A program made the position numbers and the translations under genes. Source: Hemiscyllium ocellatum (lineage: Eukaryota). From it: a stretch of 64,000 nt of DNA. The stretch is from assembly GCF_020745735.1 (NCBI RefSeq), contig NC_083409.1, positions 19,302,341-19,366,340 on the forward strand, written 5' to 3'. Shown here one piece after another: positions 6,860 to 32,051 of this stretch. The notes under the pieces were generated by a model. That model saw only the letters and a program-made list of their open reading frames with translations. It was not told the DNA's origin and searched no databases. How positions within the stretch are numbered: the stretch's first letter is position 1; each line of letters begins with the position of its first letter.

Positions 6860-7600
6860 TCTAGTCTGGCCCATTCCCTGATTTGGTTCAAGAGTGTTCG
6901 AGAAAGCATTCTTCTGTAAATTGGGTTGTCTGTTTCGCCCAGTCTTTGTGAGACTAAGTGTATATAAGTTCTTATACAGCACAGACAGAGGTCATTGGGC
7001 CTATTGTGACTGTTAGTCAAATTAGTCCAATGAGACCCATTTACCCAGCCCTTCCTGTGTAACCCTGTAATTGTTTCCTTTTCAGCTATTTCTCCAAATG
7101 CCCTTTTGAAAGTTGCTGTTGAATCCACTTCCACTCACCTTGCAGACAGTCATCATGAACTCGCTGGATAAAAATGTTCCTATCTTCTCTCTTGTGCTTT
7201 AGACTCTTTCTGAAATGTGTGCCCTCTGGTTACTGACCCTCCTGCCTGGAGAAACAATTTGTCCTGTATTTACTGCATCCAGACTCTCTAATTGTGAACC
7301 CCTCATTGAGTGAGACCTATTTCCAGCACGGGGGAGAACATTCAGCCTGTCAGGTAAATGCTATCATTTCATGGAGCAATCCAGTCAGTCCCACCCCCTC
7401 CCCTACTCGACCCCCAGAGCCTTGCAGGTTTATTTTCATCAAAAGCCCACCCAATCTGCCATTGCAATCACTGAGTGTCTTCACCTGCCTCACCTGAATG
7501 GGCACTAATTTCCAAGTCATTACCAATTGCTGCTAAAAACAAACTTCTTCCTGATATCCCATATCTCTTACCGAACAAAATGTAAGGTAACTTAAATGTG
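6860..7600 (-). mobile_element. Degraded CR1 fragments
   Basis: 3' end motifs (VEVDST.TFKR) on - strand. Confidence 0.7.
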
Positions 7601-7639
7601 AAGATGGGATTTTGTCACCACACGAACTGTGCGGTGGTC

Positions 7640-8060
7640 ACCCTTACTGATACTGTCATGGACAGATACACCAGCAGCAGGCAGGTTGGTGAGGGTGATA
7701 GTGAGTATGTTTTTCCCTCTTGTTGGTTCCCTCACCGCCTGCCCCAGGTCCAGTCTCGCAGCTGAATCAGGTGGAACTTGACCAGCTTACTCAGTAGTGA
7801 TGCTTCTGAGCAGCTCTTGATGGTGGACTCTGATATCCCTTACTCCAGGTATATTCTGCATCCTTCCCACCCTCTGTGCTCCCTCCAAGTGTTGTTCAAC
7901 ATGGAGTAGAACTGACTGCTCAGTTGAGGTTGGAGTGGAGGGCGGTGCTGTGTGGTAATCAGCAGGAGGTTTCCTTCCCCATGTTTGACCTGCTGCCATG
8001 AGGCAGCATAGTTAATGGTGAGGACTCCCAGGACTCCCTTCTGACTGTACACACCGCTGT
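7640..8060 (-). mobile_element. Non-CR1 LINE APE endonuclease fragment
   Basis: QVKHGEGNLLLIT..RPP and SVLLHVEQHLE...DI.VHHQE. Same family as 22340-23010 (+) and 53900-54420 (-). Confidence 0.6.
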
Positions 8061-8271
8061 GTTGCCTCCCCTGCTTGGTCTATCCATTAAAAACTGAATG
8101 ACGGAACAATTCTGTTTAGGTTTCACAGCTTGGAGACAGAGCTGCTGCTGGATTCTGTTTCTGATCTCCAAGTGCAGATGTGTGTGTTTGTGAGAGAGTG
8201 ACTGACACTTTTTCCACCACTGTGCTGTTTCTGTAAAAATTATTCCCAGAACCAGCCTCCTATGCTGTTAG

Positions 8272-8536
8272 ATTCCAGGGAGTGCAGATGGTTCACAGTT
8301 TTCTCCCATCCCAGTAACAAACGTCCAGCTGCTCTGAGCTCCTTCTTTCACTTCCTCTTTTGGTGAAGTTTCAACTTTGCGATCTGACAGTCTTTGCAGT
8401 TATTTTTTACACTGGGGCTTTCTGCTGTGGTCAGAATCTCTAACAATAAATGTCCAATCAGTGACAATCACAGCAGCTAAGAGCAGTCAGGACTGAGGAG
8501 CCAGGCTCACTGTGAAACATATTGGGAAGATCAAAG
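8272..8536. promoter_or_regulatory. Candidate upstream B-cell enhancer, copy 1
   Basis: Unique-looking island ~94% identical to 27701-27960. EICE GGAAGTGAAA on - strand (8346-8355), E-boxes CAGATG (8285) and CAGCTG (8326), RUNX TGTGGT (8426). Confidence 0.5.
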
Positions 8537-8629
8537 TCATCCTCTTCATCTCCTGGTCCAAACTCCATCCCTCTCCCTGGGGGTCTGCTGCACAACCAGA
8601 CTCTTTACAAACGTGGCCACATCTCTGAG

Positions 8630-8945
8630 AATGATCTGAGCCCCAAATCCTCCACATTATACAGACCAGCCACTGAAAATCTCAGTCATTTCTGTGGGAC
8701 TCCAAACATAACAATTCCAATGTTGTGCTTGCACACATCACAGCAATCACTCTCCGTAACCTTCAGTTCATCCCAAATTCTGATGCCTGTATCCAAACTT
8801 GCATCAAGTCCTGTTCCCCCAAACCCCTGCACCCTGTGTCTACATTGGCTCCTCTCCAGCAACACCTTGATTTTCAAGTTCTAATCCTTGTTCACAAATC
8901 CCTCTCTGCCCTCCACCCTCCCTATTTCTGTAACCTCCTCCAAGC
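8630..8945 (+). mobile_element. L2 LINE ORF2 C-terminal fragment (paralogous copy at 27045-27365, -)
   Basis: LQFIPNSDA...LAPLQQHLDFQVLILVHKSL..LHPPY, matching the L2 LQ..QN.AAR..LHWLPV..RI.FK.L pattern. Confidence 0.7.
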
Positions 8946-9164
8946 TGCCTCAGTCAGTGTAATCAGCAATCTTGGATGTATGGCTCTCTGTTTCTTCATC
9001 CAGGTCATTGAGAAATATCATAAAAAGCTGAGCTCCCAGCACAGATCCCTGGGGATACCACTATTCACATCTTCCTCATTGGAGGATGCACTCACTATTC
9101 TTCCTCTCTGCCTCCTACCTCCAAACTAATTCCTGACCAAAGACAAATACTTTTCTCTAATTGG

Positions 9165-11860
9165 CTTGATGGTAGGAAGCAGTGGGTAATAGTGGAAAGA
9201 TGCTTGTCAGACTAGAGGCCTGTGTCTCGTGGAGTGCCTCAGGGCTCGGTCCTGGGTCCATTACTCTTTGTTATCTATATCAATAACTTGGATGAGAATT
9301 TGCAAGGCATGATTGGTAAGTTTGCAGATGACATTACAATAGACATTGAGGGAGGTTATCAGAAATTGCAGCAGGACCTTGATCAGCTGGAGTAATGGGC
9401 AGAGAAATGACAAAATGAGTTCAGAGAGATAATTGTGAGGTCTTGCACTTTTGGAAGTTTAATCGAGGTGTGAGTACCATGGTGAATGGTAAGGCCTTAA
9501 GGACTGTAGTGAAACAGAGAGATCTTGGAGTTCAGGTTCACGGTTCTCTGGAAGTTGAGTCACAGTTCGACAGGGCAGTGAGGAATGCTTTTGACACACT
9601 GGCCTTCATCAGTCAGGGCACTGAGTATAGAAGTTGAGAAGTTATGTTACCATTGTATAGAACGTTGGTGAGGTCGCACTTGGAGTATTTGGTCACCTTG
9701 TTATAGGAAGGACATTATTAAACTGGAACAAGTTCAGAGGAAATGTACAAGCATGTTGCCAGGACTCAACAGTCCGAGTTTTTGTGAGATGTTGGACAAG
9801 CTAGGACTTTTTCGGAGAGTGTAGGAGACTGAGGGTTTTTTTTAGAAGTGTATAAGACCTTGAGAGACATGGATAGGGTGAATGCACTCAGTCTTTTTTC
9901 CAGGGTTGGGGAATTGAGGATGAGAGAGCATCAGTTTTAGGTTAGAGAGGATAAAATAAAACGGAACCTGAGGGGCAATTTGTTTATACAGAGGGTGGCA
10001 CGCATATGGAATGATCTGTCAGTGGAAGTGATTAAGGCAGGTATATTAACAACTTTAAAAAGGCATTTGGACAAATACATGGATAGGAAAGGCTCCAAAG
10101 GATATGGGCCAAGTGCAGGGAAATGGGGTTAGGGTGGATGGATATTTTGGTCAGCATGGACAGTGTGGACCAAAAAGCCTGTCTCTGTGCTGTAGGACTC
10201 GATGACTCTTTGACTCTATAATTCCATATGTTTCCATGTTTATGGGCAGTCACTCAAACACAGAAACAAAGGAACGAGCAGCAGGACTAGGCCATTCAGC
10301 CCTTCAAGTGGAGTCTGCCATTAAATATGACCATGGCTGATCATTCAACTTAGTCCCCTGCTCCCACTTTTTCCCCATAACCTTAATCCCTTTTGTCCTA
10401 AGTCCCTTTAGACCTATCTCCTTCTTGAAAACTTTTAATGTTTTTGTCTCAAACGCTTTCTGTGACAGAATATTCCACGAGCTTCCCAGTCTCTGGCTAA
10501 AGAAATGTCTCCTCAGCTCAGTCTGAAATAACCTTTCCCTTTTCTTTAAACTGTAATTCCTGGTTCTGGATTCTCCAGTGATCAGGAACATACTTCCTGT
10601 GCTTTTCTGGTCTTGACGTGTTAGGATTTTAAAGGTTCCAATGTGATTCCTCTCAATCTTCTAACCTCCAGTGAATATAATCTTGACTGATCCAATTTCT
10701 TTTTAGATTAGACTTACAGTGTGGAAACAGGCCCTTCGGCCCAACAAGTCCACACCGACCCGCCGAAGCGCAACCCACCCATACCCCTACATTTACCCCT
10801 TACCTAACACTACGGGCAATTTAGCTTGGCCAATTCACCTGACCCGCACATCTTTGGACTGTGGGAGGAAACCGGAGCACCCGGAGGAAACCCACGCAGA
10901 CACGGGGAGAACGTGCAAACTCCACACAGTCAGTCGCCTGAGTCGGGAATTGAACCCGTGTCTACAGGCGCTGTGAGGCAGCAGTGCTAACCACTGTGCC
11001 ACCGTGCCGCCCACAATCTTATCAGATCTAAGTGCTGTCCTCCCAGGAATCAGCCTGGTAAACCTTCGCTGCCCTCCCTCCACAGCCAGAACATCCTTCC
11101 TCAGATAAGGAGACCAAAACTGCACAATACAATCATAAAATCACACAGTACAGAAAAGGCCCTTCAGCCCATTAACTGTGTACCAGCCAAACTACACTAA
11201 ACCTATACCAGTCCCACTTTCCAACATGAGGCCCACAGCTTGAATGTTACGACATTTCAACTGCTCACCCAAGTACTTTTTAAAGTTTGTGAGTTTTCCC
11301 ACCTCAACTCCCCTCCCAGGCTGTGCAGTCCAGACACCCACCACCCTCTGGGTAAAAAACATTTTCCTCAAAACATCTTGAAACTTCCTATCTTTCACAA
11401 TGAATGTAAACCAACTTGTTATTGACCCTCCCATGAAGGAGAACAGCTGCTTTCTCTCCACCCTGTCCATTCCCCTCACAACCTTATACACCTCTATCAG
11501 GTCCCCCTTACAACTTCCCTGCTCTGAAGAAAACAACCTGAGCTGATCCAATTTCTCTTCATCACTGAAAGGTTCCATCCCACACAACATCCTGGTGGTT
11601 CCCCTCTGCACCCTATCCAGTGCAATCACATCCTCCTACAGTGTGGTGACCTGAACTGCACACAGTACTCCAGCTGTGAACTCACCAATGTTCTGCTTAA
11701 CTGCAACATCTCCTCCTGCTTTTATAGTCAATACCTGAAATGACCAAGGCAAGTGTCCCCTGTGCTTTCATAACTGCTCTGTTAACCTGTCTTGCCACAT
11801 TCAGGGATCAGTGGACAAGTACCCCAAGATCACTCTGTTCCTTTGAGCTTTCTCAGGTCC
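9165..11860. mobile_element. CR1 fragments (9165-10225 +, 10230-10700 -, 11015-11860 -)
   Basis: GVPQGSVLGP and FADD motifs; 3' tails. Confidence 0.88.
10703..11012 (-). mobile_element. V-SINE (HE1-like), young full-length copy
   Basis: tRNA-derived head GGGCGGCACGGTGGCACAGTGGTTAGCACTGCTGCC, V-domain GTGGAGTTTGCACGTTCTCCCCG, (TAATC)n-like tail. Confidence 0.9.
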
Positions 11861-11869
11861 AAGAACAAG

Positions 11870-12800
11870 GGACAAAGAAAATTACAAAACAGGAACAGGC
11901 CCTTCGGCCCTCCAAGCCTGCACTGATCCATAGCTTCTATCTAGACCTGTCATCAATTTTCCAAGGATCTGTATCTCTCTGCTCCCTGCCCATTCATGCA
12001 TCTATCTTGATACATCTTTAATGATGCTATCATTCCCGCCTCTATCACTTCCGCTGGCTACGTGTTCCAGTTACCAACCACTCTCTGCGTAAAGAACTTT
12101 CCACGCATATCTCTCTTAAAACTTTCTCCTCTCACCTTGAACCCATGGTCCCTAGTAATTGAACCCCTCACTCTGGGAAAAATCTTCTTGCTATCCACCC
12201 TGATTATAGTTCTCATGATTTTGTAGACCTCTAGCAGGTCCTCCCTCAATCTTCAACTTTCTATTGAAATAATGCTAATCTACTCAACCTCTCTTCATAG
12301 CTCATGCCCTCCATATGAGACAATCCTGGTTAAGCTCCTCTGCACCCTCTCCAAAGCATCCACATCCTTCTGGTAATGTGGCGACCAGAACTGTATGCAG
12401 AATTCCAAACGTGGCCAAGCCAAATTCCGATACAATTCTAACATGACCTGTCTACTCTTGTACCCCAACTGATGAAGGAAAGCATGCCATCTGCCTTCTG
12501 GACCACTCTATCAACCTGCATTACCACCTTCAGGGTACAATGGACCCAAACATCCAGATCTCTCTGTGCATCAATTTTCCCCAGGGCTTTCCATTCAGCA
12601 TATAGTTTACTCCAGAATTGGATCTTCCAAAATTCATCAGATCACATTTGCCCAGATTGAACTCCATCTGTCCGTTTCTCTGCCCAACTCTCCAATCTAT
12701 CTACATTCTGCTGCATTCTCTGATAGTTCCCTGCTACTCCACCAATCTTAGCGTCATCTGCAAACTTGTTAATCAGACCACCTGTACCTTCTTCCAGATC

Positions 12801-12846
<46 letters not shown>

Positions 12847-15490
12847 TAAACAAGAGTGGTCTCAGCACGGATTCTTGTACTCCATTTTGAGAAACTCCCT
12901 TCCAGTACTAATCTCTGTCTCCTGTTGCCCAGCCTGTTCTTTATCCATCTAGCTAGTACACCCTGGACCCCATGCGACTTTAATTTCTCCATCAGGCTAC
13001 ATGGGGAATGTTATCAAACACCTTACTGAAGTCCATGTGTATGGCGTCTACAGCTCTTCCCTAATCTAACAACTTTGTCAATTCTTCAAAAAATTCTATG
13101 AAGTAGGTAAGACATGAAATTCCCTGCACAAAATCATGTTGCCTATCACTGATACATCCATTTTCTTCCAATTCAGTATCTGCCTTAACAGCTTCCCTTC
13201 CATGACGTCAGGCTCACCGCTTGATAATTACCTGGATTATCTTTGCTACTTTTCTTATACAAGGGGACAACATTAACTATTCTCCAGTCCTCTGGGATCT
13301 CACCCATGTTCAAGATTGCTACTAAGATATCTCTTAAGGCCCCAGCTATCTCCTCTCTTGCTTCCCACAGTATCCGGGGATAGATTCCATCCTGACCTGG
13401 AGACTTGTCCACCTTAATGCCTTTTAGAATACTCAACACTTTCTTGCTCCTTAAACCAACTTGACCAAGAATAATCAAACATCTATCCCCGACTTCAACG
13501 TCCATCTTTTCCTCTTCTTGGTGAACACCAAAACAAACCACTCATTAAGAATCTCTCCCATTTTCCCTGACTCCATGCATAGCATTCCTCTCTCCTTTCT
13601 CTAGTCACCCTCTTGCTCCTTATATATGAATAAAAGGCTTTGGGATTTTCCTTAACCCATTTTGCTAATGATGTTTTGTGAGCCCTTTTAGTCCTTTTAA
13701 TTCCTCATTTCAGATCGGTCCCAGTTTCCCAATATTCTTCCAAAGCTTTGCCAGTTGTCAGCCACCTAGACCTTATGTATACATCCTTTTTCCTCTTAGC
13801 TAGTCTCACAATTTCACCTGTCATCCAGGGTTCCCTAATCTTGCCATTTCAATCCCTCATTTTCACAGGGACATGTCTGTCCTGCACTCTAATCAACCTC
13901 TCTTTAAAAGCCTGCCACATATCAAATGTGGATTTACCCTCAAACAGCTGCTCCCAATCCCCAGCTCCTGCCAAATTTTGCTAAAGTTAGCCTTTCCCCC
14001 AGTTTAGCCCTCTTCCTTTCGGACCACTCTCGTCTTTGTCCATGAGCATTCTAAAACTTACAGAATTGAGATCACTGTTCCCAAAGTAATCCCCGACTGA
14101 GATTTCAACCACCTGGCTGGGCTCATTCCCCAACACCAGGTGCAGTGTGGCCCCTTCCTGAGTTGAAATATTTACGTACGATGTAAAATCCTCCTGGGTG
14201 CTCCTTCCAAATTTTGCTCTGTCTAAACCTGTAACTTTAAGTGAATCCTTGTCAATGTTGAGAAAATTAAAATCTCCCATCACCACCACCCTGTTACTCC
14301 TACATCTTCCATAATCTGTTTACATATTTGACCGCTATCTCGCGCTTGCTGTTGGGAGGACTATAGTACAGCCCCAGCATTGTTACTGTACACTTCCTGT
14401 TTCTGAGGTCTGCCCAAATTCCCCCTCTGCTGAAGTCCTCCATCGTGCCTTCCTTCAGCACAGCTGTGATATCCTCTCTGACCAGTAATGCCACTCCTCT
14501 ACCCCTTTTACCACCCTCTCGAACACATCAGATGCATCTGTATCCTGGGATATTTAGTTGCCAATCTTGCCTTTCCTTCACCCAAGTCTCAGTAATAGCA
14601 ATAACATCATACCACCAGGTACAAATCAAGCCCTGAATTCCTCTGCCTTACCTACTACACTTTTTGCATTAAAACAAATGAATCTCAGACCACCTGTCCC
14701 TTTGCGTTCATCATCTACCTATTCTTACCCTTAGTCACGCTGATTTCATTACCTAGTTCCTTACAGGCTTTAGTTACTACCTCCTTACTGTCCACTAACC
14801 TCCTCATTTGGTTCCCATCATTCTGCTACATTATTTTGAACCGTCTCCAAGACCGTGAGCAAAAGTAGGCTGGAGGACATTGGTTCCAGTCCTGCCCAGG
14901 TGCAGGCATTCTTGATTTGTAATAGTCCCACCTCCCCCAGAACCAATCCCAATGTCGCAAAAATCTGAAACCCCCCCCACTGTGCCATCTCTCAAGCCAC
15001 TAGTTCATCCTGCCTATTCTTCCCTGTCTATTCTGACTAATACACGGCACTGGTTGCAATCGTGAGATTACTACCTCTGAGGTCCTTATTTTTAATGTGG
15101 TTCCTAACTCTCTAAATTCTGTATGTTGGACCTCATCCCGTTTATTACGTATATCATTGCGGCCTACATGCACCATCACAGCTAGCTGTTCACCCTCACC
15201 CTTCAGAGCTATTCGGGAGTCTCGTTTTTGACCACAGAACCACCTATCTATTCCCCTTACAATGTCCAAATAAACCACATCCGCTGGCTCCCCCTTGTCA
15301 AATCCACTCACTACATCCTCAAACAAGTCCAGTCGATTTGTTAAACATGATTTTTCTTTTGACAATCCATGCTGACTCTGTCCAATTCTGTCACTGTTTT
15401 CTCAGTGCGAAGCTATAAAATATTTTATAATGAATTTGAGCTTTTTCTCCACTGCTGATGTCCGACTAATTGGTCCATAATTCCCTAAAG
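11870..15490 (-). mobile_element. Long, internally deleted CR1 including ORF1 esterase, APE and RT remnants
   Basis: VHVGRNDI..FRELG..VVISRL.PVP (SGNH esterase-like, ~15000-15240); VVMGDFN and GNSD.N (APE); KSPGQDGIYPRIL, NYQAVSL and FADD (RT). Confidence 0.88.
12804..12844. repeat. (TA)n microsatellite
   Basis: Perfect TA run inside a CR1 fragment. Confidence 0.95.
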
Positions 15491-15679
15491 TTAATACTCA
15501 ATGTTTCCCTTCATGGGAAAGTAAGGGCTACACAGAAAACCACTAAGTGACCACTAGGACAGGATTCAGAATGCAGGAGGATCAAAAAGCTGAATTGTAG
15601 CTATTTCAATGTAAGGAGTTTGATCAGTAATGTGGTTGAACTGAGAGCATTGAATGGCACTTGGGAATATAGAGTCATC

Positions 15680-17935
15680 GAGACATCGAGATGTACAACG
15701 TGGAAACAAACCCTTTGTTCCAACCTGTCCATGCCGACCAGATGTCCCAACCTAATCTAGTCCCACCTGCCAGCACCCGGCCCACATCCCCCCAAACCCT
15801 TTTTATTCATGTGTGCATCCAAATGCCTTTTAAATGTTGCAATTGTACCAGCCTCCACCACTTCCTCTGGCAGCTCATTCCATACATGTACCACCCTCTG
15901 CGTGAAAAAAGTTGCTCCTTGGGTCTCTTTTATATCTTTCCCCTCTCATCCTAAACCTATGCCCTCTAGTTCTGGACTCCCCAAACCCAGGGAAAAGGCT
16001 TTGTCCATTTATCCTATCCATGCCCCTCATAATTTTGTAAACCTCTATAAGGTCACCCTCAGCCTCTGCCGCTCCAGGGAAAACAGCCCCAGCCTGTTCA
16101 GCCTCTCACTTTAACTCAAATCCTCCAACCCTGGCAACATCCTAATAGCTCTTTTTTGAACCCTTTCAAGTTTCACAACAACTTTCCGATAGGAAGGAGA
16201 CCAGAATATTTCAACAGTGGCCTCACCAAAGTCCTATACAGCCACAACATGACCTCCCAACTCCTGTACTCCATACTCTGACCAATAAAGGAAAGCATAG
16301 CAAACACCTTCTTCACTATTCTATCTACCTGTGACTCCACTTTCAAGGAGTTATGAACCTGCACTCCAAGATCTCTTTGTTCAGCAACACTCTCTCGGAC
16401 CTTATCATTAAGTGTATAAGTCCTGTTAAGGTTTGCTTTCCCAAAATGCATCACCTCGCATTTATCTGAATTAAACTCCATCTGCCACTTCTCAGCCCAT
16501 TGGCCCATCTGATCAAGATCCCGTTGTCATCTGAGGTAACCTTCTTTGCTTAAAAGAAATCCCTGAAGAAGGGCTTATGCCTGAAACATCGATTCACCTG
16601 CTCCTTTGATGCTGCCTGACCTGCTGCGCTTTTCCAGCAACACATTTTAAGGTCTGATCTCCAGCATCTGCAGTCCTCACTATCTCCTAACTTTCTTTGC
16701 TGTCCACTACACCTCCAATTTTGGTGTCATCTGCAAACTGACTAACCATACCACTTATGCTATTTCATATGCTGTTGCATTGTCTTTTTGGAATATCATA
16801 TTGTTGCAATTGCTGAGACATGATTGAACAAAGATAGGACTGGCCACTCAACATTCCAGGGTAGACAAGTATGAGGTGGGATAGACAGGGTGCAAGAGAG
16901 GTGGGTGTGTTGCATCATTGATAAAAGAAACCATGACTGCAGTATTGCTACTGAAGGAGCATTTCTTGGAAGGGTCTTCAAATGACGCCATCTGGGTAGA
17001 GCTAGACAAAAGGACAATTACTTTGCTGGGATTATACTACAGGTTCCCCAATAGTCAGATGGAGAGAGAGGAGCAGATATGTTGGCAAATCACTGAGAGG
17101 CGTGAGAGAAATAGGGCTATATTAGCAAGGAATTTCAACTTCTCTAACATAAATTTAATGTTTGACTTCATGTGAATGGAATTTTTAAAGTCCAACCAGG
17201 AGAGCTTTTAGTGCCAGTACGTAGATAGTCCCACTAGACATGGGCAGTGCTGGGCTCAATCCGAGGTAATGTCAAATTGTTGAAGAGTCAATGGGTGAGT
17301 ATTTTGGAGATAGTGAACATAACTCCGTACGTTTCCTAATTATTATGGAAAGGAATAAGGGTAGCACAGAAGTAAAGTGTCTAAAGTGAGGCAAGGCTAA
17401 TTTCAATTTCATTAGACAGGATCTGGCAAACATAGACTGGGATCAGTTACTTGGAGGTCAGTCTACATTTGGAAAGTGGGGATCTTTTTAATGTAGTTCA
17501 GGGCCAGCTTAGAAAGAAAGGCAAGGACAGCTGCTCCTGATGTCCTGGATGTCAAAGGACATGGATAGTTTGTGAAAGAAAAAGGAATAAGCACATACCA
17601 AGTACAGAGCATCAAAAAGAGGGGAGGCCCTTCAGGAGAAGAGAAAGTGTAGAGAGGTGTTTAAAAAATAGGAGGACAAAGAGGAGTCATAAAATATCTT
17701 TGGCAGCCTGATCCCCTCACCCCAGAATACTTAGGAAAGTGGCATTAGAAAGAATAGATGCACTCGTCGTCATCGTTCAGAAATCTAGACTCAGGAGCAG
17801 TTCCTATGGACTGGAAAGTGGCTAACATAACCCCACTATTTAAGAAGGAAGACAGAGAGAACACAGTGGTTTTTGTCAATCGTTTAGCTTGACATCAGTA
17901 GTGGGAGAAGTACAGGAGTCCATTATAAAAGATGC
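15680..17935. mobile_element. CR1 fragments (15680-16790 -, 16800-17935 +)
   Basis: QWAEKWQMEFNSDKCEVMHFG; LGLYYR.PNS; NFNF motifs. Confidence 0.88.
16551..16687 (+). mobile_element. 137-bp PLE-derived element with degenerate hammerhead, inserted in a CR1
   Basis: TSD TAACCTTCTTTGCT (16537-16550) / TAACTTTCTTTGCT (16688-16701). CUGAAGA-A-GGGC-UUAU-GCCU-GAAAC-AUC-GAUUC at 16563-16595. Confidence 0.78.
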
Positions 17936-18899
17936 GCAGCAAATGTTATTGTAACCTGTACCTTATGAACCGGCATTCTTGATAAACCGGCAAAAGTTAT
18001 ATCCCTCAAATGCTGCAAAGTTTAATATATCATTCTGTCCAATTATTATACATTTATAATTTATTAACTTCAGTGTAAATATACATGTTTTTCAATTGAA
18101 CGGCAACATGAAATACCAACAGTTGATTCAATTTCGAGTCAATTTCTCCTCAAACACAGCGACCTGCCGCGATGCCTGGGTAATCAGTTGCGAGTGTGAG
18201 TGAGAAGGATATGGGGAGAAAGTGGGCTATTCTAGATACAAAGCATTGCTGACCACAATCATCATCTAGTGGCCTGCTGGGTGTAGCTTGTCAGGAGCTG
18301 AACAAGAAAGAAAGAGTCATTAAGCTGAACAAGAAAGTTTGCAATTAAAGATGCCCAAGTTAAGTACATAAATCACATACTGAGAGCAAAAGGATTTGCC
18401 TGGATTCTGGAAAGGTAAGAGCGGTGGCAGTGATGTGGTGACTGACAGATGTGAAAACAGTGTAAGGGTTTGTTGGATTCGTCAAATATGAAGTGCCAAT
18501 TTCTAATTAGAGTGACAATCATGATGCTAGCCAACTATTCCCATCCCAACTGCTGGTATTATTGGACAACACAGATCTCAGACTGAAACAAACCCCAAAA
18601 CTACTGAAGAAATGCAGTTGGTCTGCAGCATCTGTCGAGCATAAGTACTCAATGCTGATGATTTAGTTTGAATAATAAGACCTCAGTGCACAAAAGAAAT
18701 GAAGATAAAATAAAACATAGTGACATAAAACGCAATTTCAAAAGATTTCAAAGCATTGCAAAATAAAATCCTTTCTATTCTAACATTATTGCTTTATTGT
18801 ACTTAAATAACAGGGAGAAGGGGTTCATTTCTCTATCGTATCTTTAGGTTTAACTTTACTCTATTTTTCATTTCATTGCCTTTAAAGTTTGATTGCCTT

Positions 18900-21635
18900 T
18901 TCCTTGATTAATACTTTGCTGGCCACAGGTGAAGTGTCAGACTGGAGGATTGTCAATGTGGTTCCTTTGTTCAAGAAGGGCAGCAGGGATAGGCCAGGCA
19001 ATTACAGACCAGTTAGTCCGATGTCATTGTCAGGGCAATTGTTAGAAAAAGTCCTGAAGTACAGGATTAAGCAATACTTGGAGAGGAGGGATGCCAGTAT
19101 TGATTTGTTTGACAAAGGCCCCACATGGAAGGCTGGTCCAGATGGTCAGAGCTCATGGGATCCAAGGCAAGTTGACAAGTTGATGGTGAAGGGTTGTCTT
19201 AGTAATTGGAAGCCTTGACCAGTGGTGTATGACAGGAATTGGGGCTGAGACCCTTTCTGTTTGTAATGTACCTTAATGAATTGACTGTGATTGTACAATT
19301 AGGAAGTTTTCAGATGCCACATAAAGTGGTGGTATTGTTGATATTGATTTGATTTTTATTTTATTGTTACATGGACTCAAGTACAAAAGTATTGGAGTAC
19401 AGTGAAAAGTATCTGATGTCACCTTGTAAGGAGCCATCTTAGGTACAAGGACCGAGATACAGAATCTTAAGACAAGTTAGAAAGAAAGAATAAATTTAAA
19501 AATTACACGTTACAGACTTATTGACCTTTTTAATTTTAAGAAGAAAATAAATAAATAAATCTGGAAGTTCAATCATTACACTTTCTTAAGTGCTTAGCTA
19601 CCGTGGGATCATCCTTTGAATCATCACTTCAAGACCGGAAGGCAAACTGAGGCTGTGCTGGGCCGAAAGACCACTTTATACAGCAAAAGACCACCCTGTG
19701 GGTCGAGAGACAACCACGCTGGGCCATTGAGAGATCGCCATGCTAGGCCGAGAGTTCATCACGCTGGAGTGACAGTCGAGCATTCTGAGCCGAGAGGCCT
19801 CCACATTAATCTGAGAGTCCAACACGTCAGACCGAGAGTCTGCCTCACCGAGCTGGGAGGTCTCTCTGCCAGGTCAGGACTCTGCCACACCAAGTCAAGA
19901 GGCTGCAACACTGGGGCTGCACTGGTCAGAGGCCTGGAGAGTGAGGCTGGGAGTCCGTGGCTGGGAGAGAAAAGAAGAGAGAATGACAAAAGAAAAACAC
20001 AGAAGAAAATCAAAACCAGTGGAAGAAAAAGCAGAAAAGGAAACAGACGGAGCAGATGAACATGGTCTGAAGTGTCCTACTCTGCTGCCATCTTGGATTA
20101 CTGGGGCTCAGGCTACAGTCTGATATTGATCAGCTGGTAATTGGGCAGAACAATGGCAGATGGAATTTAATCCTGATAAATGTGAGGTGGTCCAATTTGG
20201 GAGGTTTAATAAGGGAAGGATATACACAATGAAAGTTATGTGCCTTGAGTGTCCTTATGAATGAATCACAGAGGGTTGGTCTGCAGGTACAACAAGCAAT
20301 TCGGAAGGCAAATGGAATTTTGTCCTTCATTGCTAAAGGGATTGAGTTTAAAAAACAGAAGAGGTTATGTTGCAGCTGTACAGGATGTTGGTGAGGCCAC
20401 ACTTGGAGTACTTTGTAGAGTTTTGGTCTCCTTACTTGAGAAAGGATATACTGGCACTAGAAGGGGTGCAGAGAAGGTTGATTCCAAGGTTGAGGGTGTT
20501 GGCTTATGAGGAGAGACTGAGTAGACTGGCATTGGAACTTAGAAGAATGAGGGGGATCTTATAGAAGCATATAAAATTATGAAGAGAATAGATAAGACTG
20601 AAGTAGAGAGAATATTTCCATTGGCAGTCCTTGCCCAGTGAAGTAGTTGATGCTACTTCAGAAACATTTTTAAAGCTCAGATTTTTTTTTGAAAAATAAA
20701 GGAATTAAGAGATAAGATGAAAGCGCAGGTAAATGGAGTTGAGTCCAGGAAAAGATCAGTCATGATCATATTGCTCAGTGCAGCAGGCTCCAAGGGCCAG
20801 ACGGCCTACTCCTGCTCCTAGTTCTTATGTTCTTATGTTCCTTGGGAGTAGTGAGGAATGAAGGCCCGGAATGAATAATTGCCTGGCCTATCCCTGCTGC
20901 CCTTCTTGAACAAGTCCATCGATCCCGGAAGGTATCAGCACAGCTGGACAGGGTGGTGAAGAAGGCATATGGGATGCTTGCCATCATTGGCCAGGGTGTA
21001 GAATATAGGAGTAAGGAAGTCTCATTGTTAATTTACAGAGCATTGGTTAGGCCATATCTGGAACACTATATACATATCACTGTTGGAAAAACATGATTGG
21101 ACTGGAGAGGGTGGAGAGGAGAATCACCAGGATGTAGCTTGGGATGAAAAGTGTTAGTTTGAGGAGAGAGACTGGAGCAACTGGGTTTGTTTCCTCTGGA
21201 GCAGAGGAAGCATGGCGGTGGGTGGGGTATGGGGGGGCGTGGTGGTGGAAGGGGGTGTTAATCTGATTAAGGTATCCAATATTCTGAGGGACATAGATAA
21301 AGTCAATTGTGATCATCTTTTCTCCACGGCAGACATGTCTATGACCAGAGGGAATAAGCTTAATATGATGAAAAAGTGGTTGAGAGAGGAATTGAGGATT
21401 TTTGTTTTTCCCCAGAGGGTGGTAGAAATATGGAATGTGCTGCTTGAGAAGGTGATGGAGGTAGCTCCTTTCACAACATTGAAAACATATCCAGTTGAGC
21501 ACATAAAATGCCAGGGCATGGAAGGCTATGGACCAAGTGCAGGTAAATGGGATTAGTGTAGTTTGATGTTTATGGATCAGCATCGACATGATGGGCAGAA
21601 GGGCCTGTTTGTTTTTTGTATGACTCTATGACTAT
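18900..21635. mobile_element. CR1 fragments (18900-19330 +, 20120-20840 +, 20900-21635 +) and a putative non-autonomous LINE derivative (19330-20105 -)
   Basis: DWRIVNVVPLFKKGSRD.PGNYRPVS and LVRPHLEY. The 19.3-20.1 kb element begins CCAAGATGGCAGC on - strand and ends in an A-rich tail. Confidence 0.75.
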
Positions 21636-21959
21636 GAAGAGAAGGGGGTAAGAATATATTCCACTTCCATTGTATAAAGTACAACTGGAATGTGATTTGT
21701 TATCAGGGGAAGTAATTGCTGGAGTGGGAAAACATTCCCTGTTGAGGGAGTCGATTGCCTTCTGGGAAAGTTTTGTCAGGACTAAAGGCAGTAGCTTCCC
21801 CGATAATTACAGAATATCCAAAGGAGGGCCAAGAAACAGAACAATGATAGGAACAGGTTCCTGGTCTCTCTCCTTCGTGTGAGGTAACCAGGGCAATGGT
21901 TAAACAAAATCCATCAATAAGGGTTGATGTCTCACCACAGCAAGTGAAAGGATCGCTGA

Positions 21960-22340
21960 AACTTTCCGAAAGTGTGAAGATAATCCAGGTGGAGTGGTTG
22001 GTATGATGTCACTAATTACAGCAGATCCAAAAAGCAGATCCTGAATGAAATAAATGAGCACAGTCAGCTCATACTGAGGTCGAGGCTGGAGAGGTTTCAG
22101 AATGCTATTATCTTCAGAATGGAGCGCTGATGAGGAAGTGGAGGCTCCCCCTCATAGACTCCCAGATGAAGAATGGTCGGTTAGACAGTGGCTCGTGGTA
22201 CCACCCAGCTATCAGAAGGAGATATTGTGAGGAGCACATCAGATTTCCATGACAGGACCATGGGGATTTGAAAAACATAGGTGTCCAAAATCAGGTGTTT
22301 TATTGAGCCAAAATTATATGAAGATGTAGTGCAGTTTTAT
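21960..22340 (+). mobile_element. Gypsy LTR retrotransposon integrase zinc-finger region remnant
   Basis: YYLQNGALMRKWR...VVPPSYQKEIL..AH...GI.KT...PKLYEDVVQF pattern with frameshifts. Confidence 0.65.
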
Positions 22341-23010
22341 AAATATATCATACTTGAACTCATCTTTACCGATCTGCCAAATGCAGATGCATCTGTCCAC
22401 GAAAGTACCAGTAAGGGTGACCACCGCACAGTCCTTGTGAAGACCAACACCCGCCTTCATATTGAGAATAGTTTCCATCGTGTTGTGTGACACTATCACC
22501 ATGCTAACTGGGACAGAACTACAACTGATCTCACAACTCATGACTGGGCATCCATGAGGCACTGTGGGCCATCAGCAACAGCAGAATTGTGCTCCAGCCC
22601 CGACTCGACCATTATCATCAAACCAGGGGATCAACACTGGTTCAATGGAGAATTCAAAAGGGCATGCCAGGAGCAGCACTAGTCATTCATCAAGATGAGG
22701 TATTTACCTGGTGAAACCACCAAACAGGACTACTTGCATGCCAAGCAGCACAAGCAACAAGTGACAGACAGTATTAGACACCCCACAACCAATGGATCAG
22801 GTCTAAGTTCTGCAGTCCTGTCACATCCAGTTATGAGTGCTTGTGGACGATTAAGCATCTCACTGGATGAGCGGGTTCCACCAATATCCCCATCCTCAAT
22901 GATGGAAGAGTTCAACACATCAGGGCAAAAGATAAGGCTGAAGCTTTTGCAGAAATCTTCAGCCAGAAGTCCTGAGTGGATGATCCATCTTGGCCTGCTC
23001 CAGTGGTCCT
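22340..23010 (+). mobile_element. Non-CR1 LINE APE C-terminal fragment
   Basis: LELIFTDLPNADASVHESTSKGDHRTVLVKT. Confidence 0.65.
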
Positions 23011-23014
23011 CAGT

Positions 23015-23326
23015 GGGCGGCACGGTGGTACAGTGGTTAGCACTGCTGCCTCGCAGCGCCTGAGACCCGGGTTCAATTCCCGACTGAGGCGACTGACTGT
23101 GTGGAGTTTGCACGTTCTCCCCGTGTCTGCGTGGGTTTCCACCGGGTGCTCCGGTTTCCTCCCACAGTCCAAGATGTGCAGGTCAGGTGAATTGGCCGTG
23201 CTAAATTGCCCGTACTGTTAGGTAAGGGATAGGTGTCGGGGTATGGGTGGGTTGCGCTTCGGCGGGTCGGTGTGGACTTGTTGGCCCAAAGGGCCTGTTT
23301 CCACACTGTAAGTAATCTAATCTAAT
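23015..23326 (+). mobile_element. V-SINE (HE1-like), young full-length copy
   Basis: Near-identical to 10703-11012, with a TAATCTAATCTAATC tail. Confidence 0.9.
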
Positions 23327-24106
23327 CAGACATGATGGGCCGAATGGCCTAACGCTGCACTGATACATTGTCTTTAAAAGATACACTTAGGTGTCCCACA
23401 TTAATCGAACATGATGTGGATGTAGGTTAATCAGACCCAATAAAACAAAACCCATTTTAGTTAAAACCAGAGAAAACAAGCCAAAGTAACAAATGAAGCT
23501 CAATATTTGTTGGAGAATCAATTGATTGAGCTGTCAGAGTAATTGGAGTTCTCTTGTGTAGGATTAAGCAAAAGTCAGTATCATCTAAAACCCTAGATTT
23601 TTTTTTTAAATGGCTGTCTGGAACTATTGTTCTGCCTGGAATTCCAGTTCACATCTCAACTCTGAAAGGGACACCAACTAGAACACATTCTCTTGACTGA
23701 AACTAACTTTTACAACTTCGGCCTACTAGCACACACTATCAACAAGCAGCTTTAGAACCAAGAACCACAGAGGCCGAACGGAGAAGCTGAATCCAGACAC
23801 CAAACCAAGAGCATCATCTTAACAAAGGACACCCAAGAGTGGGAACACCAAACAAATGCTCTCTGAATAAGACCTTCCAGACACAGGTCTGTTCTGAGCC
23901 AAGAGAACCGACAGTGAGAACCGAAGCAACAGGACACATTTTAAACCTGTACTTTCCTCAGTGGTGAGCTGAAAATCCTGAGACCTGAAAGTTTCCCTCT
24001 GAGCTCGCAGGGAGGGGATGGTGGGTGATGACAATGCATTCGGACCCCAAGGGTAGGAAGCCTGATTAAAGTTTCTGTGATTAAAACTGTTTCGCTTGTA
24101 ATTGTA

Positions 24107-24772
24107 GAAAGTGAGGACTGCAGATGCTGGAGATTAGAGGTGAAAAGTGTGGCACTGGAAAAGCACAGCAGGTCTGAGAAACAGGAGAAATGACTTTTTG
24201 GGCATAAGCCCTTCATCAGGAATGTAGTGAGGGGGACAGTGGAGGACAGAATGTTTCAGGGAATATCTCTGGACACACGCACTAAATAACCCCACTGCCC
24301 TGTGACCGGCCACTTCAACTCCCACTCTCACTCTGCCAAAGACATGCAAAGACATGCTGGACCTAGTCCACTGCCAAATCGAAGCTATCCAATGACTGGA
24401 GGAAGAATGCCTCACCCTTCGCCTTGGGACCCTCCAACTACACCACATCAACATTGACCTCATCAGTCTCCTCATCTTGCCTTTCTCCACCTCAACCCAC
24501 ATCCAACCCTGCAATCAGCCTTCCAACCTATCCTTTCCACCCTCCTCTCCACTCTATCACTATCACCCCTCACCTGTAGCTGCCTATCGCCTTCCAAGCT
24601 ACCTTCCCTCCACCCCCACCCCCACCGTCCTATTTGTCTCCCAGCCCCCATCCCCCAGCCTCAACATACCTGATGAAGGGATTATGCCCAAAACATCAAT
24701 TCTTGTTTTCCTCAAATGCTGCCTGACCTGTTGTGCTTTTCCAATACCACACTTTTCGACTCTAACTTCTAA
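24107..24772. mobile_element. Penelope-like element fragment: inverted pLTR + GIY-YIG C-terminal remnant + pLTR
   Basis: Degraded PVTGHFNSHSHS..DM..LEEECLTLRLGTLQ..INID on + strand. Degenerate hammerheads at 24188-24224 (-) and 24666-24700 (+). Confidence 0.75.
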
Positions 24773-25129
24773 TAGTGTTTAACCAGTGTTTAATTTGAAA
24801 GTATATTTAATTACTTTCCTGTGCATAATTTTGCAACACTTCTAACAGTGTATTTTATTACTGTCTTCCATATAATTGATAGTGTTAATTTGATTGTTTA
24901 TTACATTTGCATTTGTTCTTGTATTATACGTACCTTCTGTATTGAATCAACACAGAGATTCTTTTGCTCTGAAACACCTGTCTACTGCTTTCTTCATTTG
25001 ACATTTTAAAATAAGTGCAGAGGCAGAACCAGGGATCTGGGGGTGATTCAAATCACCTAAATATCAGCGAACTACTGATCACAAACTAGACAGACTACCC
25101 TGATTGAACTGTTAAGAGTAATTGGAATT

Positions 25130-25400
25130 CTCTTGTTTGGTTCCTCAGCCAGATGTTTCACTTAGATTCTGTGTACACTGTAGGAAAGTGAATGTAGTCA
25201 CAAAGATGGATTTGTATCCTATTCCCAGGTCAGAAGATTGCTTTGATAGGATGGGTAGTGCGTCATTCTTATCAAAAATTGATTTGTTGAAAGGATATTG
25301 ACAAGTATCGCTGACAATAAGAGTGAAGGAAATTTCTGCCTTTGCTGCATTCTGGATCTTTGTACACAATGGAAAACTCAAATACTTTCCAAATATGTTG
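25130..25400 (+). mobile_element. Gypsy RT fragment
   Basis: LRFCVHCRKVNVVTKMDLYPIPRSEDCFDRMGSASFLSKIDLLKGY*QV. Confidence 0.78.
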
Positions 25401-25786
25401 GGATGACAGGATATAGACTGAGAGCAGCACTGAAGAAAATTAGTTTTATTAAGGAAATGGTTTTGGAAAATTTATGGGATTAAAGTTTGATAAATCCGCA
25501 GGGACCAAGAACCTAAATTTCAGATTACTTCAGGAATTGCCCAAAAACTTTGGGAACATTAGTGTTCAAGATTTAACATTTAAAGCTATGGCCCTTGTGT
25601 TGGAAAGTTGGATGACTGCAGGTTTAGTGTGGTTTGGCTGGTACAGGTACAATGGATCGAAGGGCCTCTTTTGTACTGTGTGATTTTATGATTGTATTGT
25701 GTGCAGTTTTGGTTTCCTTATCTGAGGAAGGATGTTCTGGCTATGGAGGAAGGACCGCAAAGGTTTACCAGACTGATTCCTGGGAT

Positions 25787-26343
25787 TTAAAGTCTGGTTG
25801 AAGATTTGTAGCTCGGGTGTCCGTTGTTGTAACTCTGTTCGCCGAGCTGGAAGTTTTTGCTGCAAACGTTTCGTTCCCTGGCTAGTGCTATTGGAGCCAC
25901 CTGTGAAGCGCTGCTTTGATGTTTCTTCCGGTATTTATAGTGGTTTGTTCTTGCCGCTTCCGGGTGTCAGTTTCAGCTGTAGTAGTTTGTATGTGGGGTC
26001 CAGGTTGATGTGTCTGTTGATGGATCTTCTTGCCGTTTCCAGGTGTCAGTTTCAGCTGTAGTGGTTTGTATATGGGGTCCAGGTCAGACACATAGACCTG
26101 GACCCCATATACAAACCACTACAGCTGAGACTGACACCCGGAAACGGCAAGAAGATCCATCAACAGACACATCAACCTGGACCCCACATACAAACTACTA
26201 CAGCTGAAACTGACACCCGGAAGCGGCAAGAACAAACCACTATAAATACCGGAAGAAACATCAAAGCAGCGCTTCACAGGAGGCTCCAATAGCACTGATG
26301 ATGTTCCCTAGCCAGGGAACGAAACGTTTGCAGCAAAAACTTC
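25787..26343. mobile_element. Penelope-like element 3' remnant in foldback (inverted pLTR) configuration
   Basis: 14-bp TSD CTGATTCCTGGGAT (25773-25786 and 26344-26357). Arms 25849-26085 and 26095-26344 are near-perfect reverse complements with a 9-nt loop. Internal ~78-bp duplication. DLDPIYKPL resembles a PLE ORF C-terminus. Confidence 0.85.
26292..26331 (+). ncRNA. Minimal type I hammerhead ribozyme, apparently intact
   Basis: Stem I GCA/UGC; CUGAUGA (26295-26301); extra U; stem II GUUCCCU/AGGGAAC with AGCC loop; GAAA; palindromic AACGUU stem III; GUU cleavage triplet. Confidence 0.8.
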
Positions 26344-27419
26344 CTGATTCCTGGGATGATAGCACTTAGATCTGATGAGAAACTGGATCAGTTAGGACTA
26401 TATTCACTGTTGGTTAGAATGTTGAGGGGAGTCACACTAAAAACTCTAAAATCCTAACAGGACAAGGCAGGATGTTCCTGATGACTGGGGAGTCCAGAAC
26501 CAAGGATTACAATTTACAGATATGGGAAAGACCATTTAGTGCTGAAATGAAGAGAAAGCTTTTCATCCAGTGAATGGGAAGCCTGTAGAGGTTTCTGTCA
26601 CTGAAAGCAGTTGAGCCCAAACCATTGAATGCTTTCTAGAAAGGGCATGATATAGTTCTCAGGATGAAAGTGATCAAAGGTTATGGGGAGCAAGTGGGAA
26701 CAGGTGACTGAGTTGGATGATCGGACATGATTATATTGAATGGTAGAACAGGCTCAAAGGGCTGAATGGCCTACACCTGGTCCAAGTTTCACTGTCTGAG
26801 AGACTGTTCATCAGCATGGAAGCATATTGAATTAGTAAACACATTTGCCTTGGGTCAGGAATTAGCTTAGATGTAGGAGACAGAGCAGAGGGTTAATGTC
26901 TGAGTCCTCCAATGAGCAAGATGTGAATATTACTGTCCCAGGGATCTGTGCTGGGATCCCAGCAATTCATGATATTTCTCAATACCTTGGATGAAGGAAT
27001 AGAGAGCTATATATCCAAGATTATTGATCACATTGAGTGAGGCCGCGAGGAGGGGGTCACAGAGGTAGGGAGGGTGGAAGATAGGGAGAGATTTGAGAAC
27101 AAGGATGAGAATTAGAAAATTGAGGTGGTGTTGGACTGGGAGCCTGTAGGTCAGTGAGGACAGTGGGGGATGGGGATGGGATTTGGTGCAAGTTTGGATA
27201 AGGGCAGCAGAGTTTGGGGTGAGCTGTAGTTTACAGAGGGCAATGGCCGTGATGTGGCCCAGGACAACATTAGAATGATCACGTTTGGAGTCCCAAAGCA
27301 ACGGCTGGGATTTTCAGTGAGTGATCTCTGTGCTGTGGAGGATTTGGGGCTCAGATCAACCTCAAAGATGAGGCCAAGATTGTAAGGAATCTGGTACTAA
27401 ATAAAAGATGAAAAAGTTG

Positions 27420-27625
27420 TGGTTGCTGTAAACGAGAAACAAAAAACAGAAATTGCTGGAAAAGCTCAGCAGTTCTGGCACCATCTGTGGAGAGAAAGCA
27501 GAGTTAACATTTTGGGACAAGTGAACCTTCTCAGAACTGTTCTGAGGAAGGGTGACTCGATCTGAAAGGTTAACTCTGATTTCTTTCCCCAGATGCTGCC
27601 AGACCTGCTGAGGTATTCTGTTTTT
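27420..27625. mobile_element. Short foldback element with two opposed degenerate hammerhead motifs
   Basis: Centre palindrome CAGAAC-T-GTTCTG; CTGAGGA..GAAA at 27542-27567; absent from the paralogous site (~8610). Confidence 0.65.
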
Positions 27626-27700
27626 GTAAAGAGTCTGACTGAGCAGCAGACAGTGCTCAGGGAGAGGGATGGAGGTTGTACTGGGAGCTGAAGGGGATGG

Positions 27701-27960
27701 CTTTGATCTTCCCAATGTGTTTCCCAGTGAGCTTGGCTCCTCAGTCCTGACTGCTCTTAGCTGCTGTGATTGTCACTGATCGGACACTTATTATTAGAGA
27801 TTCTGACCACAGCAGAAAGCCCCAGTGTAAAAAATAACTGCAAAGACTGTCAGATTGCAAGGTTGAAACTTCATTAAAAGAGGAAGTGAAAGAAGGAGCT
27901 CGGAGCAGCTGGGTTACTGAGATGGGAGAAAACTGTGAACCATTTGCACTCCCTGGAATG
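27701..27960. promoter_or_regulatory. Candidate upstream B-cell enhancer, copy 2
   Basis: AAAAGAGGAAGTGAAAG (EICE core 27882-27891), CAGCTG (27906), CATTTG/ATTTGCAC (27941-27949), RUNX ACCACA (27806). About 3.6 kb upstream of the V ATG. Confidence 0.55.
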
Positions 27961-27967
27961 TGACAGC

Positions 27968-28340
27968 ACATAAGAACATAAGAACTAAGAGCAGGAGCAG
28001 GCTATCTGGCCCCTCGAGCCCGCTCCATCATTCAATAAGATCATGGCTGATCTTTTCCTGGCCTCGGCCCCCCCTCCCCATCCTCTCACTATAGCCCTTA
28101 ATTCATTTACTGTTCAAAAAATATCTGTCTTACCTTCACAAACATTTACCTCTACTGAGTCAACTACTTCGCTGGGCAGGGAATTCCATAAACTCACAAC
28201 CCTCTGGGTCAAGAAGTTCCTTCTCAATTCAGTCCTCCCTAGCACAGGAGGAGGCCATTCAGCCCATCGTGTCTGTGAGTGATCCTTTTAAATCCCACTG
28301 CCCCTCTCTCTGCCCATAACCCAGCAAATCTTTCCTTTTA
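27968..28340 (-). mobile_element. CR1 3' fragments
   Basis: CATAAGAACATAAGAAC tail and FLTQRVVSLWN motif on - strand. Confidence 0.75.
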
Positions 28341-28864
28341 AGCTTGATTTTGGGGTCTCATTCATTCATTGGGAGACAAACTGCCTGGGCTGGGAAATGG
28401 AGCTCAGGACCCTGAACATTCCCTCTCCCCTCCTGAGGGACACTTGATGGTGAGGGATAGTTCTATGGAGCCCTGCAATATGTCCCTACTCTATACACTT
28501 CTCCATTCTGTGTGTAAAAGGCTGGAGCTTGCCAGCAGGATATTCAACTGCAGGAGCCATCATCAGTTTGACCAATTCTGACCACATCCACTCTCCATAA
28601 TCTTTCAACTCATGAGGAATATCATATCTGTCCATCTCCTCCTTGGTGTGAGACAGGAAAGGGACCACACCATTTCAGAAAATTTGGAATTTGTGGAGCA
28701 TAGATGGAGGAAGCTGGGAAAGGACAACTGAATCATGGAATTTGGAGGTGGGATAAGCAGGAATAAGGGTTTCTGTGGTCAAGGGGCTGATGTAGAGCAG
28801 AGACAAACCATGTTGTGGAGTTTGAAATAAGAGACCTATGTAATGGAGAGGATTTGGGGTTTGA

Positions 28865-31331: not shown

Positions 31332-31428
31332 GAGGAAGTGTGAGGTGCTGATGTGGCTCTCTCTGCCTGATGCCATTTACATACTGAGGAACACCCAGTC
31401 AGACTGTCACAGGCTGCAGCGTTATAAA
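31332..31428 (+). promoter_or_regulatory. Ig kappa V promoter
   Basis: GAGGAAGT (31332-31339), octamer variant ATTTACAT (31375-31382), TATAAA (31423-31428), ATG at 31489. Confidence 0.8.
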
Positions 31429-31488
31429 GCAGAGCCCAGTGAAGGGAGAGTTTATTAGGAACCAGGCACAGGGACAGGAGCACACACC

Positions 31489-32023: not shown

Positions 32024-32051
32024 CACAGTGATATACAGTTGTACAAAATCC
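32024..32051 (+). other. V recombination signal sequence, 12-bp spacer
   Basis: CACAGTG + ATATACAGTTGT (12 bp) + ACAAAATCC (8/9 match to consensus nonamer). Confidence 0.95.

Follow-up and report, generated by a model that had tools for sequence, protein, structure and literature searches.

A conserved block upstream of V in shark kappa light-chain clusters, a candidate B-lineage enhancer

The stretch of DNA analyzed here comprises 64,000 nucleotides of the Hemiscyllium ocellatum genome (NCBI RefSeq assembly GCF_020745735.1, contig NC_083409.1, positions 19,302,341 to 19,366,340 of the forward strand) and is referred to as the window; positions are counted from its first letter. It contains no N and holds two kappa-type immunoglobulin light-chain mini-loci that stand head to head within an old inverted duplication. 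Upstream of the variable (V) gene of each lies a copy of a non-coding block of approximately 350 bp, here called the island, which an earlier note on this DNA had put forward as a candidate B-cell enhancer and which is the subject of this analysis. The genes of the two clusters are laid out as follows, where RSS denotes a recombination signal sequence, J and C the joining and constant segments, and FR and CDR the framework and complementarity-determining regions.

Inverted-duplication arms: approximately 1082-11249 and 33624-25574
Cluster 2 V gene: 31314-32051, plus strand, open reading frame
Cluster 2 TATA-like element: 31423, plus strand
Cluster 2 leader exon: 31489-31537, plus strand, followed by an intron at 31538-31723
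Cluster 2 V exon: 31724-32023, plus strand, frame open
Cluster 2 V RSS: plus strand, heptamer at 32024, 12-nt spacer, nonamer
Cluster 2 J segment: 32590-32663, plus strand, with nonamer, 23-nt spacer, heptamer at 32622 and J coding sequence at 32629-32663 (LTFGKGTKLRL)
Cluster 2 C-kappa exon (part in open reading frame): 38458-38757, plus strand
Cluster 1 pseudo-V: 2026-2688 (with 1300-2040), minus strand, promoter, leader and V retained up to FR3

Cluster 2, on the plus strand, appears functional and unrearranged on inspection of its sequence. RNA contigs matching its V gene end at 31721 and 32005, revealing leader-to-V splicing and V-J-joined sequence (…CAGCTCCCCCATTACGTTCGGTA), so the V family to which cluster 2 belongs undergoes rearrangement and is expressed at a high level in the sampled tissue. 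Cluster 1 is a dead pseudogene: its leader splice donor has been removed by a 6-bp deletion, and a deletion of approximately 685 bp fuses FR3 to the start of the J-C intron, taking out the FR3 end, CDR3, J and both RSS. Identity to cluster 2 remains at 94-98% in the promoter, leader and intron, and the C exon of cluster 1 lies outside the window.

Island copy 2: 27623-27968, plus strand, same sense as the cluster 2 V gene, ending 3.5 kb upstream of the cluster 2 leader ATG
Island copy 1: 8263-8611, minus strand, same sense as the cluster 1 pseudo-V, approximately 5.7 kb upstream of its leader

The two islands are inverted relative to each other because the clusters stand head to head, and they are the only two copies in the 64 kb, each upstream of a V gene. 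Identity over the whole block (8263-8611 versus 27623-27968) is 90%. For the narrower interval of approximately 265 bp (8272-8536 versus 27701-27960), the earlier figure of about 94% identity is borne out, with 246 matches over 266 aligned columns (92.5%), or 95% when the 7 gap columns, mainly one 6-nt insertion or deletion, are ignored; an ungapped island stretch of 255 nt is 92.9% identical. The other collinear segments of the duplication are less similar, at 78% (8595-9148), 71% (6188-6543 and 10219-10708) and 76% (3365-3669), and the difference in identity between the island and the next flank segment is significant for the window pair (Fisher p = 2e-6). These values of 71-78% agree with the 70-80% noted earlier for the flanks, whereas their description as L2/CR1 remnants could not be corroborated, as Pfam searches of the flank open reading frames gave no match. 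No copy of the island, in the window or in the loci described below, is broken by an insertion, deletion or transposon, though insertions adjoin it.

Comparison loci were contigs of Chiloscyllium punctatum and Stegostoma tigrinum reached through V-protein homologs, so that all species considered belong to the Orectolobiformes. Two of these loci, L003 and L006, have upstream DNA too short to be informative, and the V gene of a third, L005 of C. punctatum, carries frameshifts and a CDR1-FR2 deletion that mark it as a pseudogene cluster.

L001 island: C. punctatum, 3268-3613, same sense as V, 92% identical to cluster 2, 6.4 kb upstream of the leader ATG
L002a island: C. punctatum, 4945-5280, same sense as V, 76-77% identical to cluster 2, 4.7 kb upstream of the leader ATG
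L002b island, decayed: C. punctatum, 998-1356, inverted, 74% identical to cluster 2, 3.6 kb from L002a
L004 island: S. tigrinum, 7295-7615, same sense as V, 87% identical to cluster 2, 2.4 kb upstream of the leader ATG
L005 gap of 884 N: positions 3286-4169 of L005:1-14900, approximately 10 kb out from V

The recurrence in other sharks that had been proposed as a check was thus found in two further orectolobiform species, with the composite motif described below constant in five of six copies. Every copy whose context is known, six in total, is found in a kappa locus, and in all five clusters with a known V gene the island stands 2.4-6.4 kb upstream of the leader ATG and in the same sense as V. 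The inverted L002b copy would fit a head-to-head partner cluster, as in the window. In L002 itself, V and J are already joined in the germline (approximately 10001-10600), with 28 bp from V end to J in the alignment. The claim that one block stands 5' of V in each cluster holds in the window, L001, L002 and L004, but not in the 10 kb upstream of V in L005, apart from its 884-N gap; that the block is duplicated with each cluster is a trivial consequence of the duplication of the whole cluster unit.

Repeats adjoin copy 2 on both sides.

Short interspersed element (SINE)-like insertion: 27396-27622, no strand assigned, very high copy, directly next to island copy 2; shared with L001 but not with copy 1, L002 or L004
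Repeat insertion: 27969-28240, no strand assigned, very high copy, next to island copy 2 on the side facing V; lacking in Stegostoma and L002

The SINE-like insertion has a summed read depth of 4e5-1e6. In both Stegostoma and L002 the island passes directly into the block 28241-28348, which cluster 2 carries on the far side of these insertions. This makes the insertions lineage-specific and the island the shared core. Read depth over the next flank block is at cluster level, not that of a high-copy repeat. Two side observations concern these surroundings: the SINE-like insertion gives a sub-threshold, palindromic mir-4524 match on both strands, the sole Rfam hit obtained, and the interval 25787-26357 contains a 202-nt perfect-palindrome foldback (arms 25884-26085 and 26095-26296, 99% complementary) that is inserted in ancestral upstream sequence contiguous in Stegostoma.

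Within the island, the following motifs and footprints were mapped.

Ets-IRF composite element AAAAGAGGAAGTGAAAG of copy 2: 27876-27892, plus strand, with core GGAAGTGAAA at 27882-27891
Ets-IRF composite element AAAAGAGGAAGTGAAAG of copy 1: 8345-8361, minus strand, identical 17-mer
CAGCTG E-box of copy 2: 27906-27911, no strand assigned, 14 nt 3' of the composite element
CAGCTG E-box of copy 1: 8326-8331, no strand assigned
TGTGGT (RUNX-like) of copy 2: 27806-27811, minus strand
TGTGGT (RUNX-like) of copy 1: 8426-8431, plus strand
Second CANNTG: 27941-27946 (CATTTG) in copy 2 and 8285-8290 (CATCTG) in copy 1
57-nt core of copy 2: 27789-27845, plus strand, the best-kept stretch of the island, with at least 5 of 6 copies agreeing in every column
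57-nt core of copy 1: 8392-8448, minus strand

The composite element, the CAGCTG E-box and TGTGGT are present in both window copies, as had been described from the letters alone. The second E-box is likewise present in both, but its sequence differs between them and it is absent from the copies of the other species. The 57-nt core contains GACCACA (RUNX/CBF-like), a relaxed kB-like sequence GGGGCTTTCT, an A-rich run and TAACTG. In the Stegostoma copy the kB-like sequence has changed. The composite pattern GGAANNGAAA has only two matches in the window, both inside islands. Shuffled sequences would yield approximately 4 window-wide, and the motif alone is therefore unsurprising at that scale; the expectation per 350 bp is approximately 0.02.

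The arrangement was compared in an alignment of six copies (window clusters 1 and 2, L001, L002a, L002b and L004). The string GAGGAAGTGAAAG and the RUNX-like GACCACA are each unchanged in five of the six, the exception in both cases being L002b, and the CAGCTG E-box is unchanged in all six at a constant 14-nt gap from the composite element, without insertion or deletion. The combined module GGAAGTGAAA-N14-CAGCTG occurs in all five non-decayed copies, while the remaining 15 GGAANNGAAA matches, spread over approximately 210 kb of window and fetched loci, all lack an E-box at +14. Among the five non-decayed copies, the longest stretches without any change are two, CTGACCACAGCAGAA, covering the RUNX-like site, and AGAGGAAGTGAAAG, covering the composite element. 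The full motif set is kept in 4/4 clusters with open V genes, and a broken composite element and RUNX site are found only in L002b, a copy that lacks the IRF half-site as well as the RUNX-like site and whose overall divergence is 26-27%. A CCAAT box, TCF/LEF-like and EBF-like sites and the second E-box were considered as footprints and rejected, as they are not kept across copies. The strict NF-kB pattern (GGGRNNYYCC) has no match in the island copies, and the strict MEF2 pattern (YTAWWWWTAR) matches in 2/6 copies only, at a non-conserved place, all further matches being relaxed ones.

Beyond the kappa loci, the composite-element and E-box(+14) module is missing from L007, a lambda-like C. punctatum cluster, and exact-pattern scans for the module in metagenome and prokaryote-genome collections, aimed at host contamination, gave no match. 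At L007:16940-16990, approximately 2.9 kb downstream of the gene end, CAGGTG directly adjoins GGAATTGAAA; this pair may be due to chance, three GGAANNGAAA matches per 24 kb being near expectation. A 149-aa protein filed as an Aeromonas veronii hypothetical protein on a 507-bp contig is 74% identical to shark kappa light chain and almost certainly stems from host (fish or shark) DNA in a contaminated bacterial assembly.

The conservation of the island was set against that of the remaining cluster unit. Identities below are to cluster 2, in the order cluster 1 / L001 / L004 / L002.

Island: 90 / 92 / 87 / 76%
Island core: 91 / 91 / 87 / 83%
Alignable flank blocks: 71-84 / 79-91 / 70-81 / 68-75%
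Promoter: 94 / 89 / 89 / 85%
Leader intron (31538-31723): 97 / 98 / 94 / 87%, the best-conserved part of the unit
V exon: 83 / 89 / 80 / 75%
5' J-C intron: 88 / 90 / 85 / 77%

Island divergence is approximately half that of the flanks in three of the four comparisons, and the island is one among several conserved non-coding parts of the kappa unit. A second such block lies in the 5' J-C intron, at 32930-33330 and mirrored at approximately 1380-1780. Cluster 1, L001, Stegostoma and also the deep paralog L002 can be aligned over it without large insertions or deletions. Its motifs include TGTGGTC, a (CAG)n run and ATTCCCTTCGGAAT, a near-perfect EBF palindrome, the L001 block containing ATTCCCTTGGGAAT, a perfect one. 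Its position is equivalent to that of the mammalian intronic kappa enhancer. An antisense open reading frame of 74-76 aa with a poly-Leu run in this block probably owes its existence to the CAG run.

That the island might instead be an exon or a structured non-coding RNA gene is an extremely improbable account. It could draw on a 319-nt contig from an immunoglobulin-expressing RNA library that spans 27624-27855, and on the few island words found in RNA runs. The depth of that contig, however, is 10.7, against 0-10 in other intergenic bins, and island RNA depth is 13 versus 2-4.6e5 on the kappa V genes; such an intergenic level means that the island is neither an exon nor an abundant RNA. No transcript start or RNA enrichment was found at the island in the RNA library, and no conserved open reading frame was seen across its copies. 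Rfam gave no island match, either for the whole window at the gathering threshold or for the island at the E-value threshold, and folding of both island halves on both strands was no better than shuffles (z-scores -1.1 to +1.2).

The combination of above-flank conservation, linkage to kappa V genes in fixed orientation in three species, and a motif pair of invariant spacing argues, with moderate confidence, for the island being a cluster-linked B-lineage cis-regulatory module, most likely an enhancer acting from 2.4-6.4 kb upstream of the V promoter. Such an element could operate through a Spi-family Ets factor (PU.1 or Spi-B) that would bind GAGGAAGT and recruit an IRF4/8-type factor to the abutting GAAA half-site, with an E-protein dimer on CAGCTG 14 nt downstream and a RUNX/CBF-type factor, among others, on the 57-nt core upstream. 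Once bound, these factors would jointly open the cluster; in the adjacent V-J-C unit they would drive transcription, make V and J accessible to joining and perhaps target hypermutation. All of this, from the binding of factors to enhancer activity and any part in the autonomy of each cluster, is predicted from the sequence.

Several observations weigh against this reading and should be set beside an alternative, less likely, in which the island is a functionless patch of ordinary unit DNA that looks conserved through gene conversion or concerted evolution, a low local mutation rate or recent ancestry, its motifs being chance matches picked out afterwards. The motifs were selected post hoc, and the clustering of invariant columns into footprints is suggestive and only marginally significant, hence not decisive: under column shuffling the longest invariant run has p = 0.077 and the occurrence of two runs of at least 12 has p = 0.045. 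Equal or better conservation than that of the island is seen in the promoter, in the leader intron (94-98%) and in the 5' J-C intron (85-90%), and the leader with its intron assembles from the reads of one organism as a single collapsed contig of depth 2643, approximately 75x single-copy, with 6 differences; homogenisation of unit parts or a slower local rate could therefore contribute, and where several non-coding blocks are conserved, autonomy need not be conferred by the island. Against the deep paralog L002 the whole island, at 76%, does not exceed the neighbouring alignable pieces (77-81%), and only its core is higher (83%). The dead cluster 1 still keeps its island undecayed, with 15 private island changes against 15 in the intact cluster 2; of those in cluster 1, only three fall within the proximal, motif-rich portion of the block, and no footprint is touched. 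Finally, L005 has no island within 10 kb upstream of its V, apart from the 884-N gap.

The functionless alternative itself meets contrary evidence. The window copies are 89.6% identical to each other and each is 91.4-91.6% identical to the C. punctatum copy in L001, so that homogenisation of the island within the genome is not visible. The directly adjacent collinear flank reaches only 78%, the longest invariant runs fall on the composite element and the RUNX-like site, and the spacing from element to E-box is constant. The copy that has lost motifs is a generally decayed one.

Copy number bears on both the regulatory reading and a further alternative. In three organisms, DNA reads over the island core sum to depths of 5.8k, 6.8k and 16.4k, compared with 1.5-8.5k in V bins and approximately 20-40 in single-copy contigs, which suggests approximately 150-450 copy equivalents of the island, the same order as V. 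In two of the organisms the island depth is 2-3.5x that of V, and copies outside kappa clusters are therefore possible, a point that also counts against a strictly cluster-linked element. Such numbers, together with the repeat-rich surroundings, could suggest that the island is the relic of a mid-copy transposable element residing in the ancestral kappa unit and perhaps also dispersed elsewhere, but this is very unlikely. No terminal repeats, target-site duplication, open reading frame or tail were seen in the alignments and the repeat search, only two copies occur in the 64 kb of the window, both upstream of V, and all of the fetched copies (6/6) lie in kappa loci, in fixed orientation where V is known.

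How independent shark mini-loci are switched on, excluded and mutated is a question in comparative immunology, for which the island, if regulatory, offers a short, well-delimited candidate. Were it active, the PU.1/IRF/E-protein logic of light-chain enhancers would be as old as antibody genes, and the same logic would work from a position 5' of V. A bolder extension, quite improbable on present evidence, is that the pair of PU.1-IRF composite and E-box represents a true ancient kappa-enhancer core, older than the split between cartilaginous and bony vertebrates and placed here upstream of V; with the J-C intron block it would form a complete control set in each mini-locus, explaining cluster-autonomous activation and exclusion.

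In line with the earlier note, no described immunoglobulin enhancer of a shark or other cartilaginous fish was found in the literature searched. The teleost light-chain loci of Atlantic cod and catfish are also of cluster type, with enhancers in inter-cluster DNA that are described 3' of C. The island lies neither in the J-C intron nor downstream of C, unlike kappa 3' and lambda-type enhancers, and to our knowledge no light-chain enhancer has been described in a position 5' of V. Resemblance to amniote enhancers is at the level of motifs; no similarity beyond these was seen by eye against figure text, no alignment tool having been run.

The proposal that the island shares the grammar of mammalian light-chain enhancers holds in part. 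A pairing of PU.1-IRF4 sites with E-boxes is documented: chicken, mouse and human lambda enhancers contain E-box, NF-kB, MEF2 and PU.1-IRF4 sites, and the kappa 3' enhancer contains E-box, NF-kB and PU.1-IRF4 sites (PMC3972084). RUNX, on the other hand, falls outside the classical description of the kappa 3' and lambda enhancers, its only counterpart in known elements being a putative CBF site in the chicken lambda 3'Core, which combines E-boxes with putative CBF, C/EBP and PU.1 sites (PMC3972084). The island has a similar motif set to the 3'Core, with CTGACCACAGC in the shark beside the putative CBF site CTGACCGCAGC in the chicken, E-boxes, an A-rich putative C/EBP site and a PU.1 site. This likeness is at motif level alone, and the function of the 3'Core is defined by assay whereas the shark block is known from its sequence.

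The lambda enhancers, the kappa 3' enhancer and the chicken 3'Core, with their E-box, PU.1-IRF4 and putative CBF sites, all act as hypermutation-targeting (DIVAC) elements (PMC3972084), a point in favor of a different cis role for the island: DIVAC-like targeting, control of recombination accessibility or germline transcripts, or a boundary between head-to-head clusters. The last would suit its location between two divergent clusters, a pairing that recurs at 3.6 kb in L002. A role of this kind instead of enhancer activity is unlikely, as no CTCF-like motif was noticed by eye (no scan was made) and the island lacks a transcript start or RNA enrichment. Nothing in this analysis distinguishes such a role from enhancer activity.

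The cluster-linked module proposed here shares with the Ig-lambda enhancers its composite element, whose core GGAAGTGAAA is identical to the lambda-B core of the mouse E-lambda 2-4 enhancer (PMC4872103). As in the mouse, human and chicken (cIgLambdaE) enhancers, the composite element has an A-rich 5' flank and is accompanied by a CAGCTG E-box, and an A/T-rich element beside kB-like sequence lies upstream, in an order that parallels NF-kB, MEF2 and PU.1-IRF4 (PMC3972084). The shark block differs in having no strict NF-kB or MEF2 site, in its other spacings and in its position 5' of V.

The mammalian Ig-kappa 3' enhancer core differs from the island in lying downstream of C, not upstream of V, in having CATCTG as its E2A E-box where the shark has CAGCTG, and in that the shark block is known from sequence alone. 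On the composite-site and E-box arrangement of the kappa 3' enhancer, IRF4/Pip and E47 act synergistically. The shark block has the same order in the same kappa type of locus, namely GAGGAA-N-TGAAA followed by an E-box, at a spacing of 14 nt. In human and mouse kappa 3' the E-box likewise follows the composite site after 14 nt, as machine-read from Figure S5 (PMC3972084), or after 15 nt if the published probe GAGGAACTGAAAAC is correct (PMC2192671). The shark and mammalian spacings are thus the same within one base, although exact identity is not provable.

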